Positions 9,778 to 63,248 of a DNA stretch of 64,000 nt are shown here, piece by piece. The first letter of the stretch is position 1, and every line of letters begins with the position of its first letter. This stretch comes from Octopus sinensis (lineage: Eukaryota): positions 162,316,001 through 162,380,000 of the forward strand of contig NC_042997.1 in the NCBI RefSeq assembly GCF_006345805.1. The letters are read 5' to 3'. Made by a program: the position numbers and the translations under genes. The notes beneath the pieces were generated by a model. The model was not told the DNA's origin. It saw only the letters and a list, made by a program, of their open reading frames with translations, and did no database searches.

Positions 9778-9967
9778 GACGGAGATGTATTTGCATAGCA
9801 AGTGACCTGATCTGAGATCGTGTGCTGGAACGAAAACAATTGCAGCGTGAGAGGTGTTTATAAGCCATTTAAGAAACACACAATTTAAATTTAAATGTTA
9901 AAGTGAATCTAATGGTTTTTGTGTGTTTCTTAAATGGCTTATAAACACCATCCACGCTGCAATTGTT
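9777..9967. repeat. Fold-back repeat (family G) with 48-bp inverted arms
   Basis: Arms 9835-9882 and 9920-9967 are reverse complements with 3 mismatches; same family at 17537-17887. Confidence 0.85.
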
Positions 9968-9992
9968 TGGATATATATATATATATATATAT

Positions 9993-10530: not shown

Positions 10531-10553
10531 CTGCATTTATCCTTCAATTTCAG
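10531..10553 (+). other. Splice acceptor of reflectin-1 5'-UTR intron
   Basis: Pyrimidine-rich tract ending TTCAATTTCAG, 32 nt before the ATG; same arrangement in the other two reflectins. Confidence 0.75.
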
Positions 10554-10585
10554 ACACAGAGTTTGGTAACCAATTCTCTTCCATC

Positions 10586-11692
10586 ATGTACGGGCACGGA
10601 TACAACGGTAGAATGGAACCAATGCACATGATGTCAATGGACTTCCAAGGCAGATACATGGATTCTTATGGAAGAATGGTTGATCCCAGATCCTATGGCT
10701 TCTCTGGCAGATATCATGACCAAGACAGGTACTATGGTAGATCTATGTACAACTATCACGGTTTCCATGATTTCAATAGGTTCCATAGATTTGATTATTT
10801 CATGGATTTCCCAGATATGTTTATGGATATGTCCGGTTATCAGATGGACATGTATGGAAGGTGGATGGACATGCACGGACACTACTCTAGCCCCTACTCC
10901 TACATGTTCAATTCTTCAAGACATGGCTACAACACTAGCTACTACTATGGTCGTTACGGGTTCTATCCAGAGAGATTCATGGACATGTCCCACTACCAAA
11001 TGGACATGAATGGCCGATATATGGACAGAAACGGACGTCACTGTAGCCCATATAACAACTATTACAGGCGTTATATGAATTTCCTTCATATGTACCATCC
11101 CGAGAGATCCATGGATATGTCCCATTACCAGATGGATTTTAATGGTCATTGGATGGACATGTATAATCATTACTCCCATCCTTTCTTTGGTCACAACCAT
11201 TACTATAGGGGGAGCCACTACTACCACAATTATTATCCCCACTCTAACTACAGCTGGGGACATAGATTTTACAACTACCCAGAAAGATACTTTGATATGT
11301 CCCACTACCAGATGGACTTCAATGGTCACTGGATGAACATGTATGGTCATGGCTATCAACCTTTCCATTCATTCAATGGCTCCAACGGTTATCATCATTC
11401 GGGTAACAGTTACAGTTGGGGACATAGGTACCACAACTATTACGACATGTTCAATGATATGTCCCATTACCAAATGGATTTCGACGGTAACTGGATGGAC
11501 ATGTACAATCAATACTCCTATCCTTTCTTTGGTTATAACCATTACCAAAGAGGGAGCCATTACTATAACTATTATCCCCACTATAACTACAACTGGGGAC
11601 ATAGGTTCCACGACTACCCAGAAAGATTCTTTGATATGTCTCACTACGAGATGGACTTCAATGGGCGCTGGATGAACATGCACAGATTTTAA
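10586..11692 (+). CDS. reflectin: Reflectin (368 aa, His-rich; N-terminal motif plus 6 reflectin motifs)
   Basis: N-terminal motif MEPMHMMSMDFQGRYMDSYGRMVDPR and six (M/F)D-X5-MD-X5-M(D/N)-type repeats such as PERFMDMSHYQMDMNGRYMD; Met/Tyr/Arg/Asp/His-rich with almost no Ala/Leu/Lys/Ile. Confidence 0.97.
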   Translation: MYGHGYNGRMEPMHMMSMDFQGRYMDSYGRMVDPRSYGFSGRYHDQDRYYGRSMYNYHGFHDFNRFHRFDYFMDFPDMFMDMSGYQMDMYGRWMDMHGHYSSPYSYMFNSSRHGYNTSYYYGRYGFYPERFMDMSHYQMDMNGRYMDRNGRHCSPYNNYYRRYMNFLHMYHPERSMDMSHYQMDFNGHWMDMYNHYSHPFFGHNHYYRGSHYYHNYYPHSNYSWGHRFYNYPERYFDMSHYQMDFNGHWMNMYGHGYQPFHSFNGSNGYHHSGNSYSWGHRYHNYYDMFNDMSHYQMDFDGNWMDMYNQYSYPFFGYNHYQRGSHYYNYYPHYNYNWGHRFHDYPERFFDMSHYEMDFNGRWMNMHRF

Positions 11693-14213: not shown

Positions 14214-14675
14214 ACTCCAGGACGGGACGCTAATCTATCGCAGGATTACTCATTTTTGCCAGCTGAGTAGACTGGAGCAATGTGAAATGGAGTGTTTATA
14301 TCACAACAGCCGAACGAGAACATCGCCCGCTCTAGGAATCGAAACCATAATCATATAATCATGAGTTCAACACTCTAACCACTAAGCCATGCGCCTCCAG
14401 TTCATCGTCATTCCAAGATATTCTGATCATACACCTTTTTAATTTAAAATACTTCCTTTAGGCGGCGAGCTTAGCAGAATCGTTACTGCACTGGACAAAA
14501 TTCTTAGTGACATTTCTTCCAACTTTGTGTTCTGAGTTCAAACATCGCCGGGGTCGACTTTGCCTTTCGTACTTTCAGCGTCGATAAAATAAGTACCATA
14601 TGAACATTAGGGACGATGTAATCGACTTATCCTCTCCCCCGAAATTGCTGGCCTCGTGCCAAAATTTGGCACCAA
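14214..14675. mobile_element. Family-C SINE (minus, about 14214-14399) and old family-A SINE (plus, about 14461-14675)
   Basis: tRNA-like heads pointing away from each other; central blocks match the other copies of each family. Confidence 0.75.
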
Positions 14676-14981
14676 TTTAAAATGATTCCAATACAAAAAA
14701 CTCTATGTCAAAAGTTGTTTCTTCGCCAAGAACAGAAAATACTTCAACATAAACAGGTGGCAGGGAAGCGGCATGTTGAATCGTATCGTATATTCATAAG
14801 CACTTATTCTTGAACAAATCCGAGAGAAAATAACGCCCAGCCTCTTTAATACAAACATTTCTAATTCTATATGAAAAAATTTTCCTTTCTCAGATGCAAT
14901 CATAACAGTAGAGAAATAATCCATTCATAAGTGTCGTCCTACGGAGTAGTATGTATGTATATATATATATATATATATATA

Positions 14982-15166: not shown

Positions 15167-15256
15167 ATATATATATATATATATTTTTAATAAAAGGGTT
15201 AAATTAATTAATTAATTAATTAACTAATCAATTAATATATATATACATATATACAA

Positions 15257-15486
15257 GGCGGCGAGCTGGCAGAAACGTTAGCACGCCAGGCGAAATGCGT
15301 AGCCGTATTTCGTCTGCCGTTACGTTCCGAGTGCAAATTCCGTCGAGGTCGACTTTGCCTTTCATCCTTTCGGGGTCGATAAATTAAGTACCAGTTACGC
15401 ACTGGGATCGATGTAATCGACTTAATCCGTTTGTCTGTCCTTGTTTGTCCCCTCTGTGTTTAGCCCCTTGTGGGTAGTAAAGAAAT
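15257..15486 (+). mobile_element. Young full-length family-A SINE
   Basis: GGCGGCGAGCTGGCAGAAACG head, GTGCAAATTCC B-box-like motif, GTCGACTTTGCCTTTCATCCTTTCGGGGTCGATAAA central block, tail ending GTAGTAAAGAAATA. Confidence 0.9.
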
Positions 15487-15509
15487 ATATATATATGTAT
15501 ATGTATGTA

Positions 15510-16149: not shown

Positions 16150-16155
16150 ATATAT

Positions 16156-16297
16156 ATTTCTTTACTACCCACAAGGGGCTAAACACAGAGGAAACAAACA
16201 AGGACAGACAAACGGATTAAGTCGATTACATCGACCCCAGTGCGTAACTGGTACTTAATTTATCGACCCCGGAAGGATGAAAGGCAAAGTCGACCTC
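16156..16297 (-). mobile_element. 5'-truncated young family-A SINE
   Basis: Reverse complement of the tail and central block of 15257-15486, cut at GTCGACCTC. Confidence 0.85.
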
Positions 16298-16371
16298 ATA
16301 TATATATATATATATATATATATACATGAATACATACACACACATATACGTACACATACATATATATACGC

Positions 16372-21103: not shown

Positions 21104-22050
21104 CTAGCAGCATAGCCCGGCGTTGCCCGGGTATGTAAGAGCTCCTAGTAGGCAACGACTAATCCCAATCTAGTCCTTTCCCTCTAGGGAACGAAGGCGC
21201 ATGTGTAGGTTGCAATGTCTTCTCTTCACTCGAATACTTCTGTGTATACGATGTTCCTAGCTGTCCCTTTGGGCGAAAACATGAAAACATCATTGCGCCT
21301 CCCAACGCGTGAACAGCCCACGTAGAGTTGACCGTGGGCGAAGCACTGTTCGCCCAACTGTAACCCAGCGACTTGTAGCGTTTGGCCTTGGGATTTATTG
21401 ATGGACATTGCGAAGCAGAGTTTAACAGGAACCTGAGAACGCCTGAAGTGGATTGGTAGGTCAGCGCCCGACGGTTGAAGGTGCATGGGTGGAATGAAGA
21501 CGTCCTCTCCCTTCCCACAACCGGTAAGTATTGTGGCCGTTATTAAATGTGGTGGCAAATGTTTCACAACCAGACGTGTGCCGTTGCACTGTTTAGGTGG
21601 AACCAAATTCCTGATGAGCATAATGGCCGCACCGACTTTTAACTTCAGGATGTGTGGCGGCAGGCCTGGCGGTTCAAGTGAATTCAGGAATTCAACAGGA
21701 TAATCGGCAAGCTCGGCGGGGTCTGCTGTCCTATCAATAGATTTATAGACGTGGACATCACCAGGAATAGCTTCAAGTAGCTGGATATTGATGGAGTTAA
21801 GAGTTAAAAAGGTCGAGTTGAGCTCCCTAGACAGTCTGTGGTTTGTGTTTCTGATTCTCGACCCATGTCGAATTTATCAATTTTTTTTAGAACTGGGGGA
21901 ACTTTTCAAAATTTTCGCTGCGTTAGTTTTGAATTATGACATTGGGCTATGTGTGTGTCAAGTCTCATCAGAATCGGTTGAAAGCCGTGGTCAGGGTGAG
22001 GGTACAACCTGACAGACACAAAGACAGAAAAACTGCCGTTTATATATAGA
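21104..22050 (-). mobile_element. Non-autonomous Helitron retaining a PIF1-helicase C-terminal fragment
   Basis: Minus-strand 5' TCTATATATAAA; 3' hairpin CCCGGGCAACGCCGGG then CTAG|T. 21226-about 21830 encodes LNSLEPPGLPPHILKLKVGAAIMLIRNL...CNGTRL...FAMSINKSQGQTL...HGQLYVGCSRV. Confidence 0.92.
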
Positions 22051-23762: not shown

Positions 23763-24430
23763 TGTACGTGTGTGCGCGCGCGACCCATATATATAAACAT
23801 ATGCATTTATATATATATTGTACCGTGTGAGTTGTATAATATATATATATTAGAAAAATTGCCCAAGCAGCTTAAAAAGAATGGTGACTTCTGTAATGAT
23901 AAACTTAACATTTTCAGTTGTTCTGGAGATGAGGAAAGTTTATCAAATTACTTTCATCTCGGGGAAAGGGAAACTCTGGGAAAGGATTTCTTCAGAGCAT
24001 GATCAGAAGAAGAATGCCAATTTATAAATTAGCTGAGTTGCAGAACGTAGTTATTTTATGTCGCGGAGAGCAAAATGCTTTTGCAATCTCATGGCTCATT
24101 GCTGTGGATCTTGCCTTATTAGCATCATAACAGCTTCTGGTGTTGCTATGTCCGCTTTTGCTCGTCAATTAACTTTTTCTAAAGCATATCCGAATTCTGT
24201 TTATTTACAGTTTTTACTGGTAAAAATTGCAAAAACAGATGTGTTCTTCTCAGCAGATTAAGTCAATAACAAAGATACGACACGTCAGTTTGTGATTGGC
24301 TGGAACACTACAAAGAGGCAATTTCTTTTAGTTATGTAAAAGAAATCGCATGACATAACAAAGCAATGACATAAAGCAAATGTGTTTAAAAGCGAAATAA
24401 TTCATTACCAATATACACTGCAATTCGTAA

Positions 24431-24660
24431 GGCGGCGCGCTGGCAGAAACGTTAACGCGCCAGGCGAAATGCGTAGCCGTATTTCGTCTGTCGTTACGTT
24501 TTGAGTTCAAATTCCACCGAGGTCGACTTTGCCTTTCATCCTTTCGGGGTTGATAGATAAAGTACCAGTTACGCACTGCGGTCGATGTAATCGACTTAAT
24601 CCCTATGTCTGTCCTTGTTTGTCCCTTCTATGTTTAGCCCCTTGTGGGCAATAGAGAAAT
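24431..24660 (+). mobile_element. Full-length family-A SINE
   Basis: Same head, central block and tail as 15257-15486. Confidence 0.9.
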
Positions 24661-25061
24661 ATATACTCTGCAATTCATCAGTTCAAAACACCTGATGTGG
24701 TCGTTGATCAATTAAGGGTAGTTCAAATCTTAAGCAGATTGCAAACTACCACAACTATTTTTGTTCATAATAATTTTCAACTTTAATTCTAAATGAAGCA
24801 ATTTTATAGTAGCAAACATTTTCCGTAAGAATGTGGCAATGAGTATCGTTCTCGCCACACTAACAAATTGCTAGATGTAATGCCGTTGCTGATACACAAA
24901 TCAAAAATGCTGGTGTGAGTTATTATCGCTGATACACCTCGAGTGTAGTTATCTTTTTTTTATGTAAGCGATTTGCTAATTTGCATGGCGAATAACCAGT
25001 TGTACATGGTTAAGTGTTTACTTTCATTGTCTCTCTGTCTGTGGTTTTATCACTCTCTCTT

Positions 25062-27279: not shown

Positions 27280-27373
27280 AGTTATGATCTGCTTTACGTA
27301 TTGAATTCAGAGTAATTTTCAAACGAGAAAACGACTGCCATCAACAACAGTTGGTCGATAAATGGCACTATGT

Positions 27374-28843
27374 TTAATAGTTGTAATTATCCCAAGAAGA
27401 GTAGAAATTCTGACCATCCATCCAACGGCCATCGAAATCCATTTGATTATTGAACATATCAAAGTTTCTTTCTGGATAGTCGTAATACCTCTGTCCCCAG
27501 TTGTAGTTGTAGTAGTTTGGGTAAGAGTTGTAATAGTGCCTGTTATGGTAGTTATAGCCATGGAAATTACGGCCATAATTATCCATCCAACGGCCTTCAA
27601 AATCCATCTGATAATTTCCCATATCAAAGTATCTCTCTGGGTAGTTGTAATATCTTTGGCCCCAGCTGTAGTTATAGTAAGGATAGTTATGGTGGTATCT
27701 GCCATGGTAGTTGTAGAAGGGGCTAGAATAACGGCCATAATTATCCATCCAACGTCCTTCAAAATCCATCTGGTAGTTTCCCATATCAAAATATCTTTCT
27801 GGGTAGTTGTAATATCTTTGGCCCCAGCTGTAGTTATAGTAAGGATAGTTATGGTGGAATCTGCCATGATAACTGTTGAAGGGGCTAGAATAACGGCCAT
27901 AATTATCCATCCAGCGTCCATCAAAATCCATCTGGTAGTTTCCCATGTCGAAATATCTCTCTGGGTTGTTGTAGTATCTTTGGCCCCAGCTGTAGCTATG
28001 ATAAGGGGAGTTATGTTGGAATCTACCGTGGTAGTTATAGAAAGGTGTGCAATGACGGCTATACGTATCCATCCAACGACCATCAAAATCCATTTGATAG
28101 TTTCCCATATCAAAATATCTCTCTGGGTAGTTGTAATACCTTTGGCCCCAGCTATAGTTATAATAAGGGTAGTTATGGTAGTATCTGCCATGATAACTGT
28201 AGAAGGGGCTAGAGTGACGACCATAATTATCCATCCAGCGGCCATTCATGTCCATCTGATAACCAGACATATCCATGAATCTCTCGGGATAGTACATATG
28301 AAGGAAATTCATAAATGGACAATTCATATAACGCCTGTAATAGTTGTAATAAGGGCTACAGTGACGTCCATATCTGTCCATGTATCGACCATTCATGTCC
28401 ATTTGGTAGTGGGACATGTCCATGAATCTCTCAGGATAGAACCAGTTGCGACCATAGTGGTAGCCGGGGTAGTAACCATGTCTTGAAGAGTTGAACATCT
28501 GCCAGTGGGGGCTGGAGTAGTGTCCTTGCATGTCCATCCATCTTCCATACATGTCCATCTGATAACCGGACATATCCATAAACCTCTCAGGGAAGTCCAT
28601 GAAATTACCATATCTATGGAACCTATCGTTATCATAGAAACCGTAATAGTTGTACATAGATCTACCATAATATCTATCATTATCAGAATATCTGCCATAG
28701 AAGCTGTAGCATCTGGGATCTACCATTCTTCCATAAGAATCCATGTATCTGCCTTGGAAGTCCATGGTCATTCTGGACATTGGTTCCATGATACCACGGT
28801 ATCTTCTGCTGAAATTATTTCGTCTGCTCATGTATCTGTTCAT
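27374..28843 (-). CDS. reflectin: Reflectin (489 aa; canonical N-terminal motif plus 8 reflectin motifs)
   Basis: MEPMSRMTMDFQGRYMDSYGRMVDPR plus eight PER(F/Y)(M/F)DM..YQMD...GR(W/Y)MD-type repeats; Tyr/Met/Arg/Asn-rich. Confidence 0.98.
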   Translation of the reverse strand: MNRYMSRRNNFSRRYRGIMEPMSRMTMDFQGRYMDSYGRMVDPRCYSFYGRYSDNDRYYGRSMYNYYGFYDNDRFHRYGNFMDFPERFMDMSGYQMDMYGRWMDMQGHYSSPHWQMFNSSRHGYYPGYHYGRNWFYPERFMDMSHYQMDMNGRYMDRYGRHCSPYYNYYRRYMNCPFMNFLHMYYPERFMDMSGYQMDMNGRWMDNYGRHSSPFYSYHGRYYHNYPYYNYSWGQRYYNYPERYFDMGNYQMDFDGRWMDTYSRHCTPFYNYHGRFQHNSPYHSYSWGQRYYNNPERYFDMGNYQMDFDGRWMDNYGRYSSPFNSYHGRFHHNYPYYNYSWGQRYYNYPERYFDMGNYQMDFEGRWMDNYGRYSSPFYNYHGRYHHNYPYYNYSWGQRYYNYPERYFDMGNYQMDFEGRWMDNYGRNFHGYNYHNRHYYNSYPNYYNYNWGQRYYDYPERNFDMFNNQMDFDGRWMDGQNFYSSWDNYNY

Positions 28844-28862: not shown

Positions 28863-28885
28863 CTGAAATATATATAAAAAAAGAT
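28863..28885 (-). other. Splice acceptor of reflectin-2 5'-UTR intron
   Basis: Minus strand T-rich tract ending TATATATTTCAG, 19 nt before the ATG. Confidence 0.75.
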
Positions 28886-30454: not shown

Positions 30455-30860
30455 GCAGGATTAACTTCCAAACTATTGTTGGAACTTATTTACAGCTGAG
30501 TGGACAGGAGCAGCGTGAAAGGAAGTGTTTTACTCAAGAGCACAATGCATTGCATACTCCAGGAATCGAAACCACAATTTTCTTTTCTACTCTAGGCACA
30601 AGGGTCGAAATTTTTAGGGAGAGGTCAGTCGATTAGATCGACCCCAGTACGCAACTGGTACTTAATTTATCGATCCCGGAAGGATGAAAGGGAAAATCGA
30701 CCTCGGCGGAATTTGAACTCAGAACGTAACGGCAGACGAAATACCGCTAAGCATTTCGCCCGGCGTGCTAACGTTTCTGCCAGCTCGCCGCCTTATCGAA
30801 ACCACAATTTTACGATCGTGCATGTAATACTCTATCCTGTAGGCCACGTGCCTTCATTAA
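30455..30860 (-). mobile_element. Family-C SINE interrupted by a nested family-A SINE (30582-30794)
   Basis: 17-bp TSD ATCGAAACCACAATTTT at 30565-30581 and 30795-30811, duplicating part of the host B-box region. Confidence 0.88.
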
Positions 30861-31950: not shown

Positions 31951-32353
31951 GGAATTAGTAAAAAGCGGACAGCTGGTTATTTCAACAGGAATTATTTTTA
32001 GTAAGGAGAAAATTAATTTGATGAAACAATCAACAAATAATGACAAGAATTTAATCTTTAATTAATTGTTTTTGGAATTCCTTATTCAATGTCTTTTAAT
32101 TAACATAGCTGTTAATACATGGCTTTGAAGTTTGATGGACATATGAATAATATGATTGGTTACTATAGTCTTTTCATCTGAAATCATTTACACCACATCA
32201 TTGCGCGGGATGCAGAATTGATTATCTTTCTAAAAAAACAAAATGTTTCTTCTACAATTTTGCTTTCTCCTCAGCAAATATTCAGTGTCATAATAATAGA
32301 GTAATATAAGGCAATTATAGCCATCTTACATAATCAGCACCACTTTTTAAATA

Positions 32354-33006
32354 TTGGTTTCAAATTTTGGCGCAAGGCCAGCAGTTTCGGGAAAGAGGTT
32401 AAGCCGGTTACATTGATCTCAATGCTCGACTGGTACTTATTTTATCGACCTCGAAAGGATGAAAGGTGAATTTGACCTCAGAACATGCGGATGGACGAAA
32501 TGCGATTAAGCATTTTGTCCGGTGCGATAACGATTCTGCCAGTTCACTGCCTCAAACGCACCTTCTCAAATTGCTCCGAATATTAAGATATTTTTCATGT
32601 AAGATAATCACCACGTTCAATATTACAAAATTTTCAAAAATATGATGCACATTCTATGATATATAGTGAAATCCCAAATAATAAATAATCCTTATTCTCA
32701 CAAGGAAAACTGGCGCTTTTCATATCCCCCACCCACCAAAAGTAAAAAAAAAGCAGGTGTGACAAATTAAACGTAATGAAAAAGTTTGATTTCAAATTTT
32801 GGAACAAGGCCAGCAAGTCCTAGGGAGAGGGTAAGTTGAACTCATCAACCCTAGCAGTCGAATAGTACTTATTTTATCGACCCAAAAAGACGAAAGAGAA
32901 AGATGACTTGGGTGGAGTTTGAACTCCCACCAAAAAAGAGATGAAAGAAATGCCAGAGTGCATTTATTGTCCGGCATTCTTAACGATTCCGGCAGCTTGC
33001 AGTCTT
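32354..33006 (-). mobile_element. Two old family-A SINE copies (about 32354-32552 and 32790-33006)
   Basis: Central block and AAATTTTGG(C/A)(A/G)CAAGGCCAGCA tail variant recognisable, heavily diverged. Confidence 0.75.
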
Positions 33007-34363: not shown

Positions 34364-34578
34364 ATTGGTCTTAAATTTTGGCACAAGGTCAGCAATTTGG
34401 TGGCAGGGGGTAAGTCGATTATATCGGCCCCAGTGTTCGAATGGTAGTTATTTTGTTGACCTCGAAAGGATGGAAGGCAAAGTCGACCTCGGCGGAATTT
34501 GAATCCAGAACGTATAAACGGATGAAATGCCGCTAAGCATCTTTCCCGGCGTGCTAACGATTCTGCCAGATCGCCGCC

Positions 34579-34579
<1 letters not shown>
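34364..34579 (-). mobile_element. Family-A SINE
   Basis: Head ends TCTGCCAGATCGCCGCC; central block GGAAGGCAAAGTCGACCTCGGCGGAATTTGAA. Confidence 0.85.
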
Positions 34580-34641
<62 letters not shown>

Positions 34642-35360: not shown

Positions 35361-37754
35361 AAATTCTGGTCAAAGATTCTGGTCAAACATATGGTCCCAG
35401 GAGAAACAACACGAAACTGAAGCAGAGCGGTTAAAGACACTCAAAGAGGAGAGTAGAGAGTATCAGCTAGAGGATTTAAGAATAACCGAGGAGATGATTA
35501 GAGATCAATGCAGAAAAATTCCTAACTGGAAAGCGCCTGGCCCAGATGTAGTTCAGGGCTTTTGGCTTAAAAACTTGACAGCTCTGCACAGGACAATTGT
35601 GAGACAGCTGGATATACTGAATAGTGACATTCAAGTACCGACCTGGATGACAAAAGGAAGAACGGTACTATGCCAGAAGGACCCAAGTAAAGGGAATGCG
35701 GTTGGAAATTTCCGACCAATATCTTATTTGCAACTGATGTTGAAACTGATGACAGCTGAAATACTGAATAGTGACATTCAAGTACCGACCTGGATGACAA
35801 AAGGAAGAACGGTACTATGCCAGAAGGACCCAAGTAAAGGGAATGCGGTTGGAAATTTCCGACCAATATCTTATTTGCAACTGATGTTGAAACTGATGAC
35901 GGGCATCATATCAAACTGCATCTTTAAGTACCTAGATGAGAACGATCTACTACCAATGGAACAAAAGGGATGTATACGTAAGAGCAGAGGAACAAAGGAT
36001 CAATTTCTAATCGATAAGACTATCCTGGCTGATTGCAAGAAGAGACACAAAAAATTGGCGATGGCATGGGTAGACTACAGGAAAGCATATGACATGGTCC
36101 CACACTCGTAGATTATTGAATGTCTTAAACTGCTTAAGGTCTCACACAATATCCTGAAGCTAATACAAAAGTCAATGACAACGTGGTGCGCTGAACTCAC
36201 AGCATGGAGAGATAAGCTGGGAGAGGTAAATATCAAAAGAGGAATTTTTCAAGGGGACAGTCTGTAGCCTCTCATATTTGTTGTCTGCACACTGCCACAA
36301 ACGATCGTTTTAAGAAAGCTGCGTGTAGGGTACATGCTAAGACTGAGAAAAAATTGAGAGTTTGACGACATCTGTGCAGGTGATTAGCAAGAATATTGCC
36401 ATGGAATTTTGGATTGAGAAATGTTGTACAATGATCCTCAATAGGGGGAAAATCAGTAAAAGCTATGGGATCAAGCTGGAAAATGGTGAAACTATAAGGG
36501 AAGTCGGAGAGGAAGGACATAAGTACCTAGGTATCATTGAAAGAAATAAGATGAATGAACACAAGGTGAAGGAAATGTACAGGAAAGAGTATTTGAGGAG
36601 AACTCGGCTTCAGCTCCAATCGAAGCTAAATGGCCGCTATAAGATTGGGCAGTTGCTTTGATGAGATATGTGGAAAGAATAGTATCTTGGAAGAAGCATG
36701 AATTACGAGAGATAGACCGGAGAACACGTAAATTAATGACAATGAATAAGGAACTACACCCCAAGAGTGATGTGATAAGATTACATGTAAAGAGGAGGGA
36801 AGGAGGACGGGAATTAGTGTGATGTGAAGGTTGTGGAAAGGAAAAGGAGAGTAGCCTGGCCTGGTATGTCAGGGAAAATTCAGGGAACCTTTAGAGTGAA
36901 CGAAGCCATAGATCCAAAACAATTTAAGAGAGACCAGAGAGAGCAGATGAAGAAAATATGGCAGGACAAAAAAAATGCACAGTCAGTTCTTGAAGAATAA
37001 AGATGAGATTAATTAGAATAGAACCTGACAATGGCTGCAGAAAGGAGACGTAAAAGGGCCAACTGAAGCATTAGTGTGCAGCGCTCAAGAACAAGCTCTC
37101 AGAACAAACTACTCCAAATATCACATTGATAAAAACACTGACTCGCCACAGTGTAGGATGTGCTCTGAGAAGGGAAAAAAGTATAAGCCATATTGTTAGT
37201 GAGTGCTGAAAGCTCGCACAACGCAAATATAAAAGGAGATACGACAATGTGGCCAGATATATCCACTGGCTGTTGCACAGTAAAGCAAACCTCGAGAGAG
37301 TCGAACAATGGTATGAACACAAGCCGGTATGAATACATGCAGTGCGACCAAGTCATAGAGGCGAGAGGACCAGATATCATCTCATTCATAAAGATGAGAA
37401 AGAAGTAAAGATACCAGGCGACTCGAGGGGGAAATGTAAGGAAACAGAAAGATTGAGAAGTACCAGCCACGGCGGGACGTTATGGAGCATGAGGAAAGTA
37501 ATGATGATACCGGTGGTAGTAGGAGCATTAGGAGCAGTTTCCAAGGGCTTTGAAAGACATATAAAGAATATTGGAGCTGCTGTCAAGCCCGAGGTGATCC
37601 AGAAGACAGCATTGTTGGGTACAGCTCTCATTTTAAGGAGAGTATGGTCTCTTTGAGTCACAGTAATCACTACTTGAAACCTTTGGTGATTTGTTGTTGC
37701 TTGCTTTCAAGTAAAGAATAACTTGTAATTAAGAACTATCTGAGAGTATTTCAT
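35361..37754 (+). mobile_element. 5'-truncated, decayed R4/Dong-clade non-LTR retrotransposon (RT plus restriction-like endonuclease)
   Basis: NWKAPGPD, NFRPIS, EQKG...GTKDQFLID, AWVDYRKAYDMVPH, RGIFQGDS, CRMC zinc knuckle, RPDII, IPVVVGALG motifs with stops and frameshifts; begins in (TAA)n and ends in (AGT)n. Confidence 0.93.
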
Positions 37755-53104: not shown

Positions 53105-53819
53105 TGGTTTCACATTTTGGCACAAGGCCTGCAATTTCAGAGAGAGGGGTAAGTCGATTACATTGACCCCGGTATTCAAATGGTACTTATTTGATCGATT
53201 CCGGAATAATAAAAGACAAAGTCGACCCCAACGACATTTGAACTCAGAACGTAAAGATAGACGTGTCGTTAAGCATTTTCCCTGGTGTGTTAAAGATTTT
53301 ACCAGCTCACCACCTTAGGGGATTATTGTACAAAATATTTTTATTGTGCCCTTGGTAGAAGGTGGCGAGCTGGCAGAATTGTTAGCACGCAGGGCAAAAA
53401 TGATTAACGACATTTCGTCTGCCTTTGCGTTCTGAGTACAAATTCCGCCGAGGTCTACTTTGCGTTTTATCCCATTCGGGGCCGATAAACTAAGTATTAG
53501 TTGAGCACCGGGGTCGGTGTAAACAACTTACCGTCTTCCGTGAAATTGCTGCCCTTGTGTCAAAATTTAAAACCAATAAGATGGGTAGAAGAGGTAGTGA
53601 GCTCTGGCAGAATTGCTAGCGCGCTAAACAAAATGCATAGCAATATTTCGTCCGACTTTACATTCTCGGTTCAAATTCCGCTGAGGTCCACTTTGCTGTT
53701 CATCCCTTTTGGGACAATAAGATAAGCACTAGTTGAGCACTGGATCCGATATGATCGACTGCTCCGCCACCCACAAAATTTCAGGCCTTCTACCCATCTT
53801 ATGCCTGTAATAGAAAGGA
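53105..53819. mobile_element. Cluster of three old family-A SINEs (minus 53105-53316; plus 53361-53578; plus 53593-53819)
   Basis: Diverged heads and central blocks; first two are head-to-head, about 45 bp apart. Confidence 0.8.
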
Positions 53820-54466
53820 GTATTTAGTAGGTTGGTAGACTCATTACTGCGTCGAACAAAATGCCTTTTTGGTATATTTTTCGCTTTCATCTTTCCTAGT
53901 TCAAATCACACCAAGGCTAAATCAATTTTACTCCATCTAGAATTGATGAAATAGAGTACAAATTTAGTACTAAATAATTTCCCACTAAATTTAAGGTTTC
54001 TGCCTATATTAGCAAATAAGCATCCCCATTCCCGAAGTCACACTGTTTCAGCTGGTGCCCTCTCTTGCCGGTCGCATTTACCTTAGGGGCCGGTCGCATT
54101 TTCTGACATTCTAATTTTCTGGCACTCTAATTTTCTGACATTCCTATCAAGATCACTCTCTCCCACCTGGAATACCCACTTTACTTATATCTACATATGT
54201 GTGTGTGTGTGTGTGATGGTCAGTTTATGGTATACATCTATGTGTGCTATATATGTGCCGTGTCTGTGATTCCCTTTTACCATGATAAATATGATACATT
54301 CGGATCGGTTATATTTGGAACTCATTGCAATTATTTGTCGCTATTTCTGTTTGTAAGAATCATTGCAGTGTTGTATCCTTCCATACATATTCACGTTTAT
54401 GTATTCACACAATAATACAGTAGTTAATAATATTTTTTTTCTTATTAATATTAATTGGAGCGATAA

Positions 54467-54867
54467 GGCGGCGAGCTGGCAGAAACGTCAGCATGCCGGG
54501 CGAAATGCCTAGCGGTATTTCGTCTGCCGTTACGTTCTGAGTTCAAATTCCTCCGAGGTCGACTTTGCCTTTCATCCTTTCAGGGTCGATTAAATAAGTA
54601 CCAGTTACGCACAGGGGTCGATATAATCGACTTAATCCGTTTGTCTGTCCTTGTTTATCCTCTCTGTGTTTAGCCCCTTGTGGGTAGTAAAGAAATAGCA
54701 GAATCATTGCCGCGACGGACAAAATGCTTAGATGTATTTCGTCCGTCTTTGTGTTCCTTGTTCAAATACCGCCGAGGTTGATTTTGCTTTCATCCTTTCG
54801 GGGTCGAACGCGACTTAATCCTCTTCTCCCGAAATTGCCTACTTTGTACCAAAATTTAGAAACAATA
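54467..54867 (+). mobile_element. Young family-A SINE (54467-54697) abutting an older copy (54698-54867)
   Basis: Tail AAAGAAATA joins directly to GCAGAATC of a diverged copy with the other tail type. Confidence 0.85.
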
Positions 54868-60418: not shown

Positions 60419-60546
60419 TCAGTTATATAATAGATTGATAATATTTGTTGAAGCACTGAAGAAGGAAATAATTACGTTTCATTTCAAATTTTGGTATAAG
60501 AAATAAATATTCGTTCTTATAGGATTTCCTGTACGCTGATTTATTA

Positions 60547-61869
60547 TTACCAGAAGTTATCGCTGCTATAATTATTCGAATCCATCCAACGACCATCAAA
60601 ATCCATCTGATAACCGGACATATCAAAGAACCTTTCAGGGTAGTCTTGATATCTCTGACCCCAGTTGAAATTATGGCTTTGAGAGGGATTGCTGTTTTGT
60701 TGGTATCTATTAGAGTGATTGTAGTTACCGGAGAAAGGCTGACACTGACGATCATCCATATCCATCCAATGACCATCGAAATCCATCTGGTAGTTACCCA
60801 TATCGAAGAGCCTCTCTGGGTGCTGGATATATCTTTGACCCCAATTGAAATGATGAGGGAGGCTGTGCTGATATCTGCCATGAAAGTTATTATAGCCATA
60901 GAAAGGATTAGAATAACGACCATACATATCCATCCAGCGACCGTCAAAATCCATCTGATAATTGCCAATATCGAAGTTCCTATCTTGGTATCTTTGACCG
61001 TAACTGAAACTGTTTTGAGGTTGGCCATGATGCTGTCTTCCTTGGTTGTTGTTGTTATAACCATTGAAAGGCGACTGATTACGGCCGAACATATCCATCC
61101 AGCGACCATCAAAATCCATCTGGTAGTTGCTCATATCGAAGTATCTTTCTGGGTAGTGGTAATATTTTTGACCCCAATTGTAGTTGTAGTGAGGGTACAT
61201 GTTATAACTGTATTGTTTACCATAATAATTGCTATTATCATAGAATGGGTGGCAATGGCGACCGTAGGTATCCATCCATTTTCCATCAAGATCCATCTGA
61301 TAGTTGCTCATGTCGAAGAACCTATCTGGGTAGTTAACGCCTCTTTGACCCCAGCTATAGTTAACATGAGGGTAATTCTGATGGTGTCTGCTACCATAGT
61401 TGCTGAAAGGGCTTGAATAACGACCATTTGAATCCATCCAGCGTCCATGCATATCCATTTGGAAGTTGGACATGTCCATTAATTTCTCAGGGTTGTACAT
61501 ATGGTAGTTTTCATAGTTGTTGCTTGGATAATTCATATGACGTCTGCTATAGGGATTGCAGTGACGACCGTACTTGTCCATATAACGGCCACGCATGTCC
61601 ATCTGGTACCCAGACATGTCCATATGTCTTTCAGGGAATTGCATAAAGCGACCATGCTTTTGGAATTTATCATTGTCATAAAAGCCAGTGTTGTGCATCG
61701 ACCTGTAGTTGGAGTTTCTACCGTAGTAATCATTACACCTAGGCTCGACAAGTCTTCCGGAAGAATCCAAGTATTTTCCTTGGAAATCCATTGTCATTCT
61801 TGTCATTGGTTCCATGACACCTCTGTGTTTTCTGCTGCTATTACGAAACATATTTCTGGAACGATTCAT
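60547..61869 (-). CDS. reflectin: Reflectin (440 aa, divergent; N-terminal motif plus 7 reflectin motifs)
   Basis: MEPMTRMTMDFQGKYLDSSGRLVEPR plus seven motifs such as PERYFDMSNYQMDFDGRWMD; ends with TAA TAA TAA. Confidence 0.97.
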   Translation of the reverse strand: MNRSRNMFRNSSRKHRGVMEPMTRMTMDFQGKYLDSSGRLVEPRCNDYYGRNSNYRSMHNTGFYDNDKFQKHGRFMQFPERHMDMSGYQMDMRGRYMDKYGRHCNPYSRRHMNYPSNNYENYHMYNPEKLMDMSNFQMDMHGRWMDSNGRYSSPFSNYGSRHHQNYPHVNYSWGQRGVNYPDRFFDMSNYQMDLDGKWMDTYGRHCHPFYDNSNYYGKQYSYNMYPHYNYNWGQKYYHYPERYFDMSNYQMDFDGRWMDMFGRNQSPFNGYNNNNQGRQHHGQPQNSFSYGQRYQDRNFDIGNYQMDFDGRWMDMYGRYSNPFYGYNNFHGRYQHSLPHHFNWGQRYIQHPERLFDMGNYQMDFDGHWMDMDDRQCQPFSGNYNHSNRYQQNSNPSQSHNFNWGQRYQDYPERFFDMSGYQMDFDGRWMDSNNYSSDNFW

Positions 61870-61887
61870 TCTTGGGAAATTGTTTTA

Positions 61888-61910
61888 CTGAAATATATAG
61901 AACAGAATTA
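61888..61910 (-). other. Splice acceptor of reflectin-3 5'-UTR intron
   Basis: Minus strand TTCTGTTCTATATATTTCAG, 18 nt before the ATG; shares TATATATTTCAG with the reflectin-2 acceptor. Confidence 0.75.
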
Positions 61911-63248
61911 TTGATAACCACATGAATTCAGATGCTATCATATAAATGTGTAATGTTTACATATGTGCGATTTCATATGATTTATAATGTAAAGGAAATA
62001 ATGGCAATCAAGAGTGAAAGTTGTATAACTAACAGCTTTTGTTTCTCAGAATAAAAGATTTGTCTTCGTATCCTGTCACTGGTAATGCGTCCTGTTCTCG
62101 GACAAAGTATTGAGCTTTTAATGCTCTTGTCTCTAGTTGAAAGTAGGTATCATGATAAGGATGCTTCTATTTATTGGATGAACAATCCTTCTGTGGTAAT
62201 GTGAATTACTAGGTTTGATTTATTAGTGCCTGACAAGGGTATGAATAATAACATTGCTATTATAGTTATAGAATATAGCTAACTGTTTTAAAAGCTATAT
62301 AATTGAACATAGACTCACATATGTCGAGAATAGGGAGATATCTCTCACACTGAAATCATGAAATATAAGATATCAAATCTCATCACGAAAATATTGTAAA
62401 TCTGAAAGATCATCATACACATTTTGTAATGAGGATCAGATTTAGAACAGAATCAGATTAAGATGGACTAAGACGAGGTGTGAAAGTTATTCATTAAGAT
62501 TATTTTGAAACTACATAAGAAATTAAAGCAAGGCAAAACACCTCTTTGATAGATTGAAGTAAGGTTAGGTATATGATGGATATCAAAAATTTTTTTGCCA
62601 CAAGGATTGCCCGAGAATTAGATATCCTTCAAGGAAAATTAGTCGCAATGGCTGTCCTAAAAAGATAAGAATTTATAATTGACTTGAGATGCATAGAGCC
62701 AGAGATCAACATCTGTCACAGTCTTGATTCAGCGGAAGCTAACTTTTAGCATTTGGTGCTCATCAGCAAAGAAAAAAAATACATGCATAAAAGAATAGAA
62801 AATATCAAAATACTATGAACAGATTTTTACTTTTAGCTAAGACATAGTATAAGCTATGCGTGTTTTTTTTTAAGACGGAACTGTTTAACTTATAACGCAT
62901 CGATATGAAAAGAAAAATATTTGCGAATAAAAAAGCAGTAAAAAAGAAAGAAGGGGTGAGAGAGAAAGAGAGGGAGACGAAAAAAAAAAAAGAAAACTTT
63001 AGTTGTCTCTTTAGAACAGCCTGCTATAGGATTCGTCAGTGAGCTCTCATATTAAATAGTTTAAATCATAAAAGTCGTTGCTTGTTTCGATATCCTTATG
63101 TTATGTTAATACACATCGTGGACAATATGCTACTAGTGAATTTAATTCAAAGTTAAAATTTTCAAGCATGTATATAAGCTATAGGTGCACATAAAAAATA
63201 AAACGTAAAAAGAAAGGAGTAGAACAATGAGAATTTCCTCCAGATATA

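Follow-up and report, generated by a model that had tools for sequence, protein, structure and literature searches.

How did one gene of Octopus sinensis for reflectin, a skin-iridescence protein, come to resemble a neighboring paralog closely in its 5' half and hardly at all in its 3' half? The window that we analyzed, a stretch of 64,000 nucleotides (64 kb) from contig NC_042997.1, holds exactly three reflectin loci (tblastn), which we call g1, g2 and g3; the same search found no further reflectin copies or pseudogenes in the 64 kb that might have served as sequence donors. The g1 and g2 genes are convergent (tail-to-tail) and lie ~15.7 kb apart, while g2 and g3 are in tandem, ~31.7 kb apart. 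A preliminary description of this DNA had proposed either that the inverted genes g1 and g2 had undergone partial gene conversion or that g1 was chimeric in origin. We favor the first proposal, which is supported by a step in silent divergence, by bounds on both sides of the similar segment and by incongruent trees: with a probability of about 65%, an internal segment of ~510 bp in g1 is the product of interlocus gene conversion, in one or more events, in which g1 received the sequence of g2 or of a g2-type gene.

All three genes carry the sequence hallmarks of the reflectin family. The N-terminal motif MEPMxxM(T/S)MDFQG(R/K)Y(M/L)D is present at amino acids (aa) 10-26 of g1 and 19-35 of both g2 and g3, and the reflectin motif, [M/F]D(X)5MD(X)5MD(X)3-4, by which membership is judged, is repeated six, eight and seven times, respectively. 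Sepia officinalis reflectin 1 (P0004) was matched by g1 with E 3e-59 and by g2 with E 4e-76, and other named matches include Doryteuthis reflectin-like A2 and Acanthosepion reflectin 14. Pfam has no reflectin family model, and a sub-threshold match to Formyl_trans_C_2 was judged spurious. Each coding region is a single exon preceded by a TTTCAG splice acceptor. In g2 and g3, the distance from this acceptor to the ATG is 18-19 nucleotides (nt); in g1 it is 32 nt, and the acceptor there is putative, assigned by analogy with those of g2, g3, Argonauta and O. bimaculoides. For comparison we used the g2-type genes of Argonauta hians (Ah; P0002, locus L001) and Octopus bimaculoides (Ob; P0003, locus L002), as well as an orthologue of g3 (P0001; loci L003-L005, from SRA assemblies), which is genomic, since its intron acceptor is included.

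The resemblance between g1 and g2 is concentrated in a tract that begins at the MEPM motif and takes in the initial 11 nt of repeat motif 3 (codon-alignment columns 20-200; window 10613-11122), in agreement with the span of 10613-11130 first claimed. Across this tract, 88.4% of nucleotides and 81.8% of amino acids are identical, with a proportion of synonymous differences (pS) of 0.30, a synonymous divergence (dS) of 0.37 and a nonsynonymous divergence (dN) of 0.09 (Nei-Gojobori), compared to a pS of ~1.0 (saturated) and a dN of 0.30 in the 3' half. Outside the tract, identity falls to ~50-63% in the leader and the 3' half, with saturation at silent sites, and no alignment of the flanks is possible. 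Similarly, codons for the same amino acid are identical in 117 of 135 cases within the tract, compared to 52 of 89 outside it. The DNA of the reflectin motifs themselves shows the step: g1 and g2 agree at 47 of 48 positions in motif 1, at 46 of 48 in motif 2 and at 37 of 48 in motif 3, where the first 11 nt are identical and divergence sets in thereafter, and identity drops from 0.94 to 0.63 between adjacent 25-codon windows. Thus, the sharp divergence after motif 3 and the nearly matching DNA of motifs 1 and 2 that had been noticed at the outset are confirmed, and a shared tract exists, although "near-identical", the term used for the 5' half, is too strong for genes that differ to this extent.

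An exact run of 44 nt, also noted initially, is likewise present. Such a run is not expected by chance (0 expected); within a tract of this difference density its length is unremarkable (simulated P ~0.2), and exact runs of 38-39 nt are common to cross-species orthologues. We therefore rejected it as a sign of recent exchange.

Since the genes are built from repeats, a drop in identity could arise if the wrong units were compared. In an all-against-all comparison of the linker-plus-motif units, u1, u2 and u3 were each 87% identical between g1 and g2, and the 3' units of g1 matched no g2 unit at more than 73% of nucleotides (61-64% at third positions), no better than they matched g3. Thus, misregistration of repeats does not explain the drop in identity.

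The tract is bounded at both ends. At its 3' end, a maximum chi-squared (max-chi2) analysis placed the breakpoint after alignment column 199/200, at about window position 11120, both with all sites and with third positions alone (permutation P<=0.0005 in each case). The junction falls inside repeat motif 3, in which ATGGATATGTC is common to both genes and is followed in g1 by that gene's own SHYQMDFNGHW type. At the 5' end, the eight alignable leader codons before MEPM mismatch at 12 of 24 positions, compared to 59 of 510 in the tract (Fisher 9e-6); this leader/tract mismatch ratio of 4.3 compares with 0.9-2.0 in orthologue pairs. Beyond the coding regions, Smith-Waterman scores between g1 and g2 were indistinguishable from those of shuffled sequences, both for the 5' untranslated region (UTR) plus 400 bp upstream (z 0.7) and for 600 bp downstream (z 0.2). 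By the same measure orthologous flanks still scored, with z 3.5 and 13.8 for Argonauta against O. bimaculoides, 4.2 for the upstream flank of g2 against that of O. bimaculoides, and >100 for g3 against its own orthologue. No collinear homology between the flanks of g1 and g2 was found over 6 kb with blastn, which returned dispersed SINE-like repeats only. The leader mismatch and the unalignable flanks together place the similar segment inside the exon, as a patch of low silent divergence with an edge on each side.

These two edges bear on the second of the original proposals, in which g1 would be a chimera, with a g2-type 5' part fused to the 3' array of another reflectin through one crossover (unequal or non-allelic) or a partial segmental duplication. 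The sharp 3' junction within a conserved repeat motif and the orphan character of the 3' half of g1 are what such a fusion would leave. A fusion should also have brought along the leader, 5'UTR, intron and upstream flank of g2, none of which g1 possesses, and similarity should run on through the gene end into the flank, where in g1 it stops. Moreover, crossing over between inverted genes would invert the interval and swap the 3' halves, not equalize the 5' halves, and no second gene with a 3' array of the g1 type exists in the window. We consider a chimeric origin by single crossover quite unlikely.

If conversion placed g2-type sequence in g1, the tract and the rest of the gene should have different phylogenies. 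In the tract, dS between g1 and g2 (0.37) is lower than that between g2 and Ob (0.55) or g1 and Ob (0.65), and these are in turn lower than the values for g2-Ah (0.89), g1-Ah (0.90) and Ah-Ob (0.83). Neighbor-joining trees of the tract accordingly united g1 with g2 (90% bootstrap) and this pair with O. bimaculoides (99%), leaving Argonauta outside, whereas trees of the 3' part (columns 201-325) united g2 with Argonauta at 100% and excluded g1. Informative sites in the comparison of g1, g2 and Ah shifted from 53:34:19 in the tract to 31:82:26 in the 3' part (Fisher 3e-6; 2.6e-4 for third positions alone). The preliminary description had stated that a uniform dS, together with trees that agree between the two halves, would speak against its claim; since dS is strongly non-uniform, at 0.37 in the tract and saturated outside, and the trees support conflicting splits (90/99% vs. 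100%), that result was not obtained.

We considered that no exchange took place and that the 5' module merely looks younger, because protein constraint, codon constraint or a low mutation rate holds it back. The N-terminal motif is indeed the most conserved part of reflectins (g1 and g2 are 77-82% identical to g3 at the nucleotide level there), and in orthologue pairs, too, the 5' module is overall more alike than the tails. Between orthologues, however, silent sites change no more slowly in the tract. The g3 gene and its orthologue (90% aa identity) differ by a dS of ~0.2 that is uniform along the gene (5' part 0.22, 3' part 0.18), max-chi2 found no breakpoint between them at third positions, and identical synonymous codons between Ah and Ob make up 76% in the tract compared to 73% in the shared C-terminal tail. 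Furthermore, tract silent sites of both g1 and g2 are saturated relative to g3, and constraint cannot yield well-supported incongruent topologies. We found no shift in GC content at third positions of the sort that biased conversion might leave (0.56 vs. 0.57 and 0.54 vs. 0.51). Thus, from the uniform silent-site controls, heterogeneity in constraint or mutation rate does not account for the step, and a reading without exchange is extremely improbable.

The orthologues also bear on the direction of transfer. The g2 gene is a collinear orthologue of Argonauta hians P0002 through u5 (u4-u5 79% nt identity; windows 86-88%), and its leader is 74% identical to that of Argonauta, so that g2 is orthologous to Argonauta on both sides of the tract. 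Outside the tract, g1 is an orphan. Searches of 5.8e9 clusters and of 1.84e9 representatives yielded no g1 orthologue; a word-indexed search with g1 gave 10 hits, the best at 51-60% identity, and in an exhaustive phmmer search of the 1.84e9 representatives the best relative of its 3' half was the g3 orthologue, at 50% aa identity. Database searches with g2 found no relatives beyond those found with g1, and no second reflectin lies within +/-10 kb of either the Argonauta hians or the O. bimaculoides orthologue. Two of the database matches, P0011 and P0012, are proteins of >1100 aa in which several reflectin-like repeats (PERYMDLSxYTMDFxGRF) lie within a larger Met/Pro/Gly-rich protein; they could be distantly related to the reflectin motif, or they could be merged gene models. 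We infer that the mechanism was conversion and that it was resolved where homology anchored the ends; the contrast between the flanks of the tract in g2 and those in g1 points to a transfer from g2 to g1.

A different source is conceivable: a third g2-type reflectin, located beyond the window, might have converted g1 as well as g2, or the transfer might have run from g1 to g2. The cluster probably extends past the window, as the 8-9 reflectin sequences reported for O. bimaculoides and O. vulgaris indicate, and at one patch within the tract g1 keeps the orthologue-like HMMS where g2 has SRMT. Set against this, the g2 tract is flanked on both sides by Argonauta-orthologous sequence, and within the tract it is g2 that lies closer to the orthologues (dS to Ob 0.55, compared to 0.65 for g1, and a lower dN to both Ah and Ob). 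The SRMT patch is explained by 5-6 later changes in g2, and the HMMS/SRMT cluster of differences has no significance on its own; the patch arose in g2, perhaps by micro-conversion from a canonical paralog or else by point changes. A third donor or a reversed direction therefore seems very unlikely to us.

Several points weigh against conversion. The 5' boundary rests on eight codons and an unalignable UTR, and the clade of g1 and g2 without O. bimaculoides received only 79% bootstrap support at third positions. The comparison of g2 with O. bimaculoides also breaks at columns 200-206 (max-chi2), because the O. bimaculoides gene lacks u4-u5, which shows that turnover of repeat units alone can make a breakpoint at this position. 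In addition, a 162-bp tandem array in g2 starts 3 nt from the end of the tract, so that homogenization of the array could have erased an earlier similarity. An identity of ~63% outside the tract is low for homologous recombination, unless there were earlier exchanges or pairing involved the ends only. Finally, those searches found no g1 orthologue that might display the state of g1 before conversion, so that the direction of transfer is one that we infer.

Some of these points suit a reading in which g1 is a whole-gene duplicate of g2, made at a dS of ~0.37, whose 3' array then either shed its g2-type units while older kinds of unit expanded, or evolved very rapidly toward histidine, and whose leader decayed after the start codon was lost; comparisons past motif 3 would then pair non-orthologous units. 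Turnover of units is plainly active, since u4, u6 and u7 of g2 are 90-94% identical to each other and u4 and u6 of g1 are 88% identical, and the O. bimaculoides orthologue without u4-u5, the same-column breakpoint and the end of the tract at the start of the g2 array are all as this reading would have them. An in-frame AACCAATTC in the g1 5'UTR, equal to the N-Q-F leader codons of Argonauta, also fits a decayed leader. Yet Argonauta dates u4-u5 in g2-type genes to before the coalescence of the g1 and g2 tracts, so that g1 would have had to lose u4-u5 and regrow three units of a type that is absent from g2, Ah and Ob; as described above, its 3' units are no closer to g2 than to g3. Moreover, the UTRs and flanks of g1 and g2 have no similarity (z 0.2-0.7), yet orthologous flanks at a dS of 0.55-0.83 retain some, and a 50% divergence of the leader is too high for a dS of 0.37. 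Duplication followed by turnover is in our judgment unlikely.

Under the conversion that we favor, g1 and g2 would be old paralogs in an octopod reflectin cluster, and window positions 10613-11122 of g1 would have been overwritten, non-reciprocally, by the homologous sequence from g2 or from another gene of the g2 type, either in a single event or in the last of a series that homogenized only this non-repetitive module. The last exchange would date to ~0.37 synonymous substitutions per site ago, probably after the split from the O. bimaculoides lineage. The two ends of the tract coincide with the islands that are best conserved across the family (MEPM...MDFQG at one end, the MDMS start of the repeat motif at the other), and these may have offered a broken end the homology needed for gap repair or synthesis-dependent strand annealing. 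In a plausible variant, repeated conversions would have kept the N-terminal modules alike for a long time and ceased at a dS of ~0.37.

After the exchange, g1 would have diverged about twice as fast as g2 in the tract, mostly by replacements, several of them to histidine. When tract differences were polarized with both outgroups, 29 were derived in g1, 14 in g2 and 16 were ambiguous. Synonymous changes were about equal, with eight in each gene; g1 had ~21 replacements, five of them to His, and the changes in g2 were mostly silent apart from the SRMT patch. A 15-nt indel (CPFMN) flanked by microhomology, which had been reported at first, proved correct: g2 carries a direct repeat of TATGAATT where g1 has a single copy. 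Since both outgroups, Argonauta and O. bimaculoides, retain the five CPFMN codons, it is g1 that has lost the 15 bp, which would have happened by slippage between the two TATGAATT repeats.

The 3' repeat arrays of g1 and g2 would have been remodeled independently by unit duplication. In g1, u4 and u6 form an internal duplicate pair (88% nt; dS 0.56). In g2, the 162-bp array has a dS of 0.36 between u6 and u7, 0.58 between u4 and u6 and 0.78 between u4 and u7; it is young, with u5 older than u4, u6 and u7. The remodeling is thus of an age similar to that of the tract exchange (0.56 in g1 and 0.36-0.78 in g2). Between genes, units are only 51-73% identical for g1-g2 and 63-78% for g2-g3 (39-67% at third positions), so that units are more alike within genes than between them. 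Such intragenic concerted evolution explains the repeat arrays, not the tract. The 3' end of g2 consists of canonical units and a g3-like tail in place of the extension of Ah and Ob, and the 3' end of the g2-type lineage has therefore been remodeled in one lineage or the other. The g2-type genes of Ah and Ob (L001 10001-11344 and L002 10001-11035) share a degenerate C-terminal extension ending in ...NYQVEFGGKWPSQEYE, and no vestige of the C-terminal unit specific to them (QVEFGGKWPSQEYE) was found in the window.

The preliminary description had also likened the termini of g2 to those of g3. The two genes do share the start MNR...RG(I/V)MEPM.RMTMD with its xRMT, GNYQMDFDGRWMD, the linker WGQRY and the acceptor, of which the 12-mer TATATATTTCAG occurs only twice in the 64 kb, both times at the g2 and g3 acceptors (0.02 expected). 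Its presence at both is non-random, but the 12-mer belongs to a conserved splice signal of 20 nt, the position of the intron is itself conserved, and farther upstream the two genes have no similarity. The MNR leader and a 5'UTR intron acceptor at about -19 are also found in Argonauta and O. bimaculoides, and the MNR leader with an SRMT motif in Sepia reflectin 1. Since the MNR leader, xRMT, WGQRY and the acceptor position thus recur in Argonauta, O. bimaculoides and/or Sepia reflectins, they are ancestral features that have been retained. Furthermore, the g2 leader is nearer to that of Argonauta (74% nt) than to that of g3 (65%), the longest exact run between g2 and g3 is 27 nt, and max-chi2 picked out the conserved N-terminal motif only, without significance at third positions. 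Third-position informative sites among g1, g2 and g3 in the 3' part form a star (18:22:23); at all positions (36:53:41) a grouping of g2 with g3 is mildly favored, as expected if g1 is the derived, fast-evolving protein. The resemblance is therefore real but lends no support to an exchange, and g2 is not shown to be a mosaic with g3.

The g1 protein is an atypical reflectin. It contains 39 His residues (10.6%), and in its 3' half His reaches 13.8% and Arg falls to 4.8%. Its isoelectric point (pI) is 6.7, with a net charge of approximately -3 at pH 7 and +13 at pH 6, compared to a pI of 8.4 for g2 and 8.1 for g3. Its motifs read SHYQMDFNGHW and its linkers WGHR, where the usual forms are GNYQMDFDGRW and WGQR. 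From this composition, g1 could be a strongly pH-switchable reflectin variant. The gene has neither the MNR leader nor the C-terminal tail. Within 10553-10612, the frame is open from the putative acceptor to the ATG (TEFGNQFSSI-M), with AACCAATTC in frame at 10568-10576; from this it seems that an ancestral start codon was lost or that the first exon is coding.

A bounded tract means that the two halves of g1 have different histories, and whole-gene trees and Ks (synonymous) ages for this cluster would mislead; whole-protein reflectin trees are the basis on which cluster expansions are dated and lineage-specific duplication is argued. The block from the N-terminal motif to repeat motif 3 is marked as an exchangeable module. 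We can picture reflectins more generally as two-speed modular genes, in which this module is kept alike by recurrent, possibly selected conversion and the 3' arrays are free to diverge, although we doubt that this extension holds. If it were true, a canonical assembly module would have been grafted onto an acidic, His-rich (pH-switchable) reflectin, a natural domain swap that would point to separable functions of the halves of a reflectin gene. As a His-rich, near-neutral reflectin, g1 is possibly worth expressing.

The remainder of the window is octopod nuclear DNA, AT-rich, with numerous microsatellites and transposon fragments (Table 1). About 0.6 kb upstream of g1, immediately followed by a (TA)n/(GA)n microsatellite, there is a near-perfect inverted repeat (9834-9968) with a 35-nt spacer between 50-nt arms that are 94% complementary; it is probably a foldback element or one like a miniature inverted-repeat transposable element (MITE). 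Around each of the three reflectin genes are copies, 72-93% identical to one another, of a dispersed repeat of ~170-240 bp that resembles a short interspersed element (SINE). This repeat is also found in locus L002 of O. bimaculoides (77-87%) and is the sole sequence common to the gene flanks. An open reading frame (ORF) at 21226-21621 on the minus strand had no Pfam match. Long ORFs that are antisense or out of frame to the reflectin coding regions were rejected as genes, being stop-poor artefacts of extreme codon composition and repeats. An assembly artefact was likewise rejected as the origin of the tract, since a divergence of 12% cannot cause collapse.

Table 1. Reflectin genes, tract-related features and other elements, in window coordinates
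Feature	Position	Strand	Remarks
Putative 5'UTR-intron splice acceptor of g1, TTTCAG	10548-10553	+	Read in the sequence
Reflectin gene g1	10586-11692	+	ORF, motifs, homology; single coding exon, 368 aa; N-terminal motif and 6 reflectin motifs
g1 copy of shared tract	10613-11122	+	MEPM N-terminal motif to first 11 nt of repeat motif 3
HMMS patch of g1	10625-10636	+	6/12 nt differ from g2; like NMMS of Argonauta and O. bimaculoides
44-nt exact run, g1 copy	10637-10680	+	Covers MDFQGRYMDSYGRMV of the conserved N-terminal motif
44-nt exact run, g2 copy	28722-28765	-	As above
Single TATGAATT at the 15-bp deletion site of g1	11074-11081	+
g1-specific 3' half	11123-11689	+	Rest of motif 3 and units u4-u6; 13.8% His; ~63% nt identity to g2, silent sites saturated
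Reflectin gene g2	27374-28843	-	489 aa; N-terminal motif and 8 reflectin motifs
Tandem array of g2, units u4-u8	27416-28262	-	162-bp (54-codon) period; 5.2 copies, 82% matches (Tandem Repeats Finder, TRF)
g2 copy of shared tract, inferred donor	28265-28789	-	Both sides collinear with Argonauta orthologue
TATGAATT-GTCCATT-TATGAATT direct repeat of g2	28306-28328	-	15-nt spacing; encodes (Y)MNCPFMNF; substrate of the deletion seen in g1
SRMT patch of g2 (TCCAGAATGACC)	28766-28777	-	Like the canonical/g3 state TRMT and decapod reflectins
TATATATTTCAG splice acceptor of g2	28863-28874	-	Ends 19 nt before ATG
Reflectin gene g3	60547-61869	-	440 aa; N-terminal motif and 7 reflectin motifs; outgroup paralog
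TATATATTTCAG splice acceptor of g3	61888-61899	-	Ends 18 nt before ATG; also in g3 orthologue L003
SINE-like repeat copies	~14460-14690, 15250-15500, 16150-16300, 24430-24670, 30600-30800, 32300-32550, 34400-34600, near 53200-54700		Approximate positions
Reverse-transcriptase fragment	35494-36111	+	Pfam RVT_1, E 7e-8; internal duplication of ~47 aa
Long ORFs antisense/out of frame to reflectin coding regions	10916-11368, 27319-28245, 60423-61112	-
Long ORFs antisense/out of frame to reflectin coding regions	27362-28486, 60646-61416, 61501-61914	+

The genes described here can be set beside several known systems. The canonical reflectins (e.g. Sepia officinalis reflectin 1), reportedly those described by Crookes and co-workers in 2004, share with the octopus genes the N-terminal MEPM..M(T/S)MDFQGRYMDS, the repeated [M/F]D(X)5MD(X)5MD motifs and a composition rich in Y, M, R, N, G and D and lacking A, I, L and K. 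The g1 protein departs from them in being acidic to neutral, rich in His, N-terminally truncated and without a C-terminal tail. With Lepore-type fusions, g1 shares a junction within a conserved repeated motif and modules of different histories; in a Lepore-type fusion, however, similarity covers all of one side of the junction and continues into the flank, whereas g1 shares an internal segment only.

Tandem clusters of reflectin genes are known from Euprymna, Doryteuthis, Architeuthis and octopods (PMC6386654, PMC9068888). In Argonauta argo, four clustered reflectins, one of them inverted and divergent, include a stretch of 97% identity over 760 bp; gene conversion and concerted evolution are the explanation given by the authors (Yoshida et al. 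2022, Genome Biol Evol, PMC9635652). Thus, conversion in octopod reflectin clusters has already been proposed, and the process that we favor here is of the same kind. The two cases are alike in that an octopod cluster of single-coding-exon genes has one inverted, divergent member and long shared DNA of high identity. They differ in that the A. argo stretch is recent and lies in the C-terminal repeat region of genes in the same orientation, whereas the tract shared by g1 and g2 is old (88% identity, dS 0.37), N-terminal and non-repetitive, bounded on both sides and carried by inverted genes, with an incongruence tested against orthologues. We found no description of a bounded mosaic of this kind in reflectins in the open-access literature.

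Tracts of interlocus gene conversion are known between dispersed or inverted paralogs, as in the human gamma-globin genes, in segmental duplications and in palindrome arms, and inverted orientation favors conversion without deleterious deletion. The g1/g2 tract resembles these classical cases in being a patch of a few hundred bp of low silent divergence within divergent paralogs, with incongruent phylogenies and a non-reciprocal appearance. Unlike them, it is ancient and no longer identical, its donor and acceptor are deduced, and the divergence outside it is unusually high. Conversion at this locus is an event of the ordinary kind that is expected in clustered paralog families.

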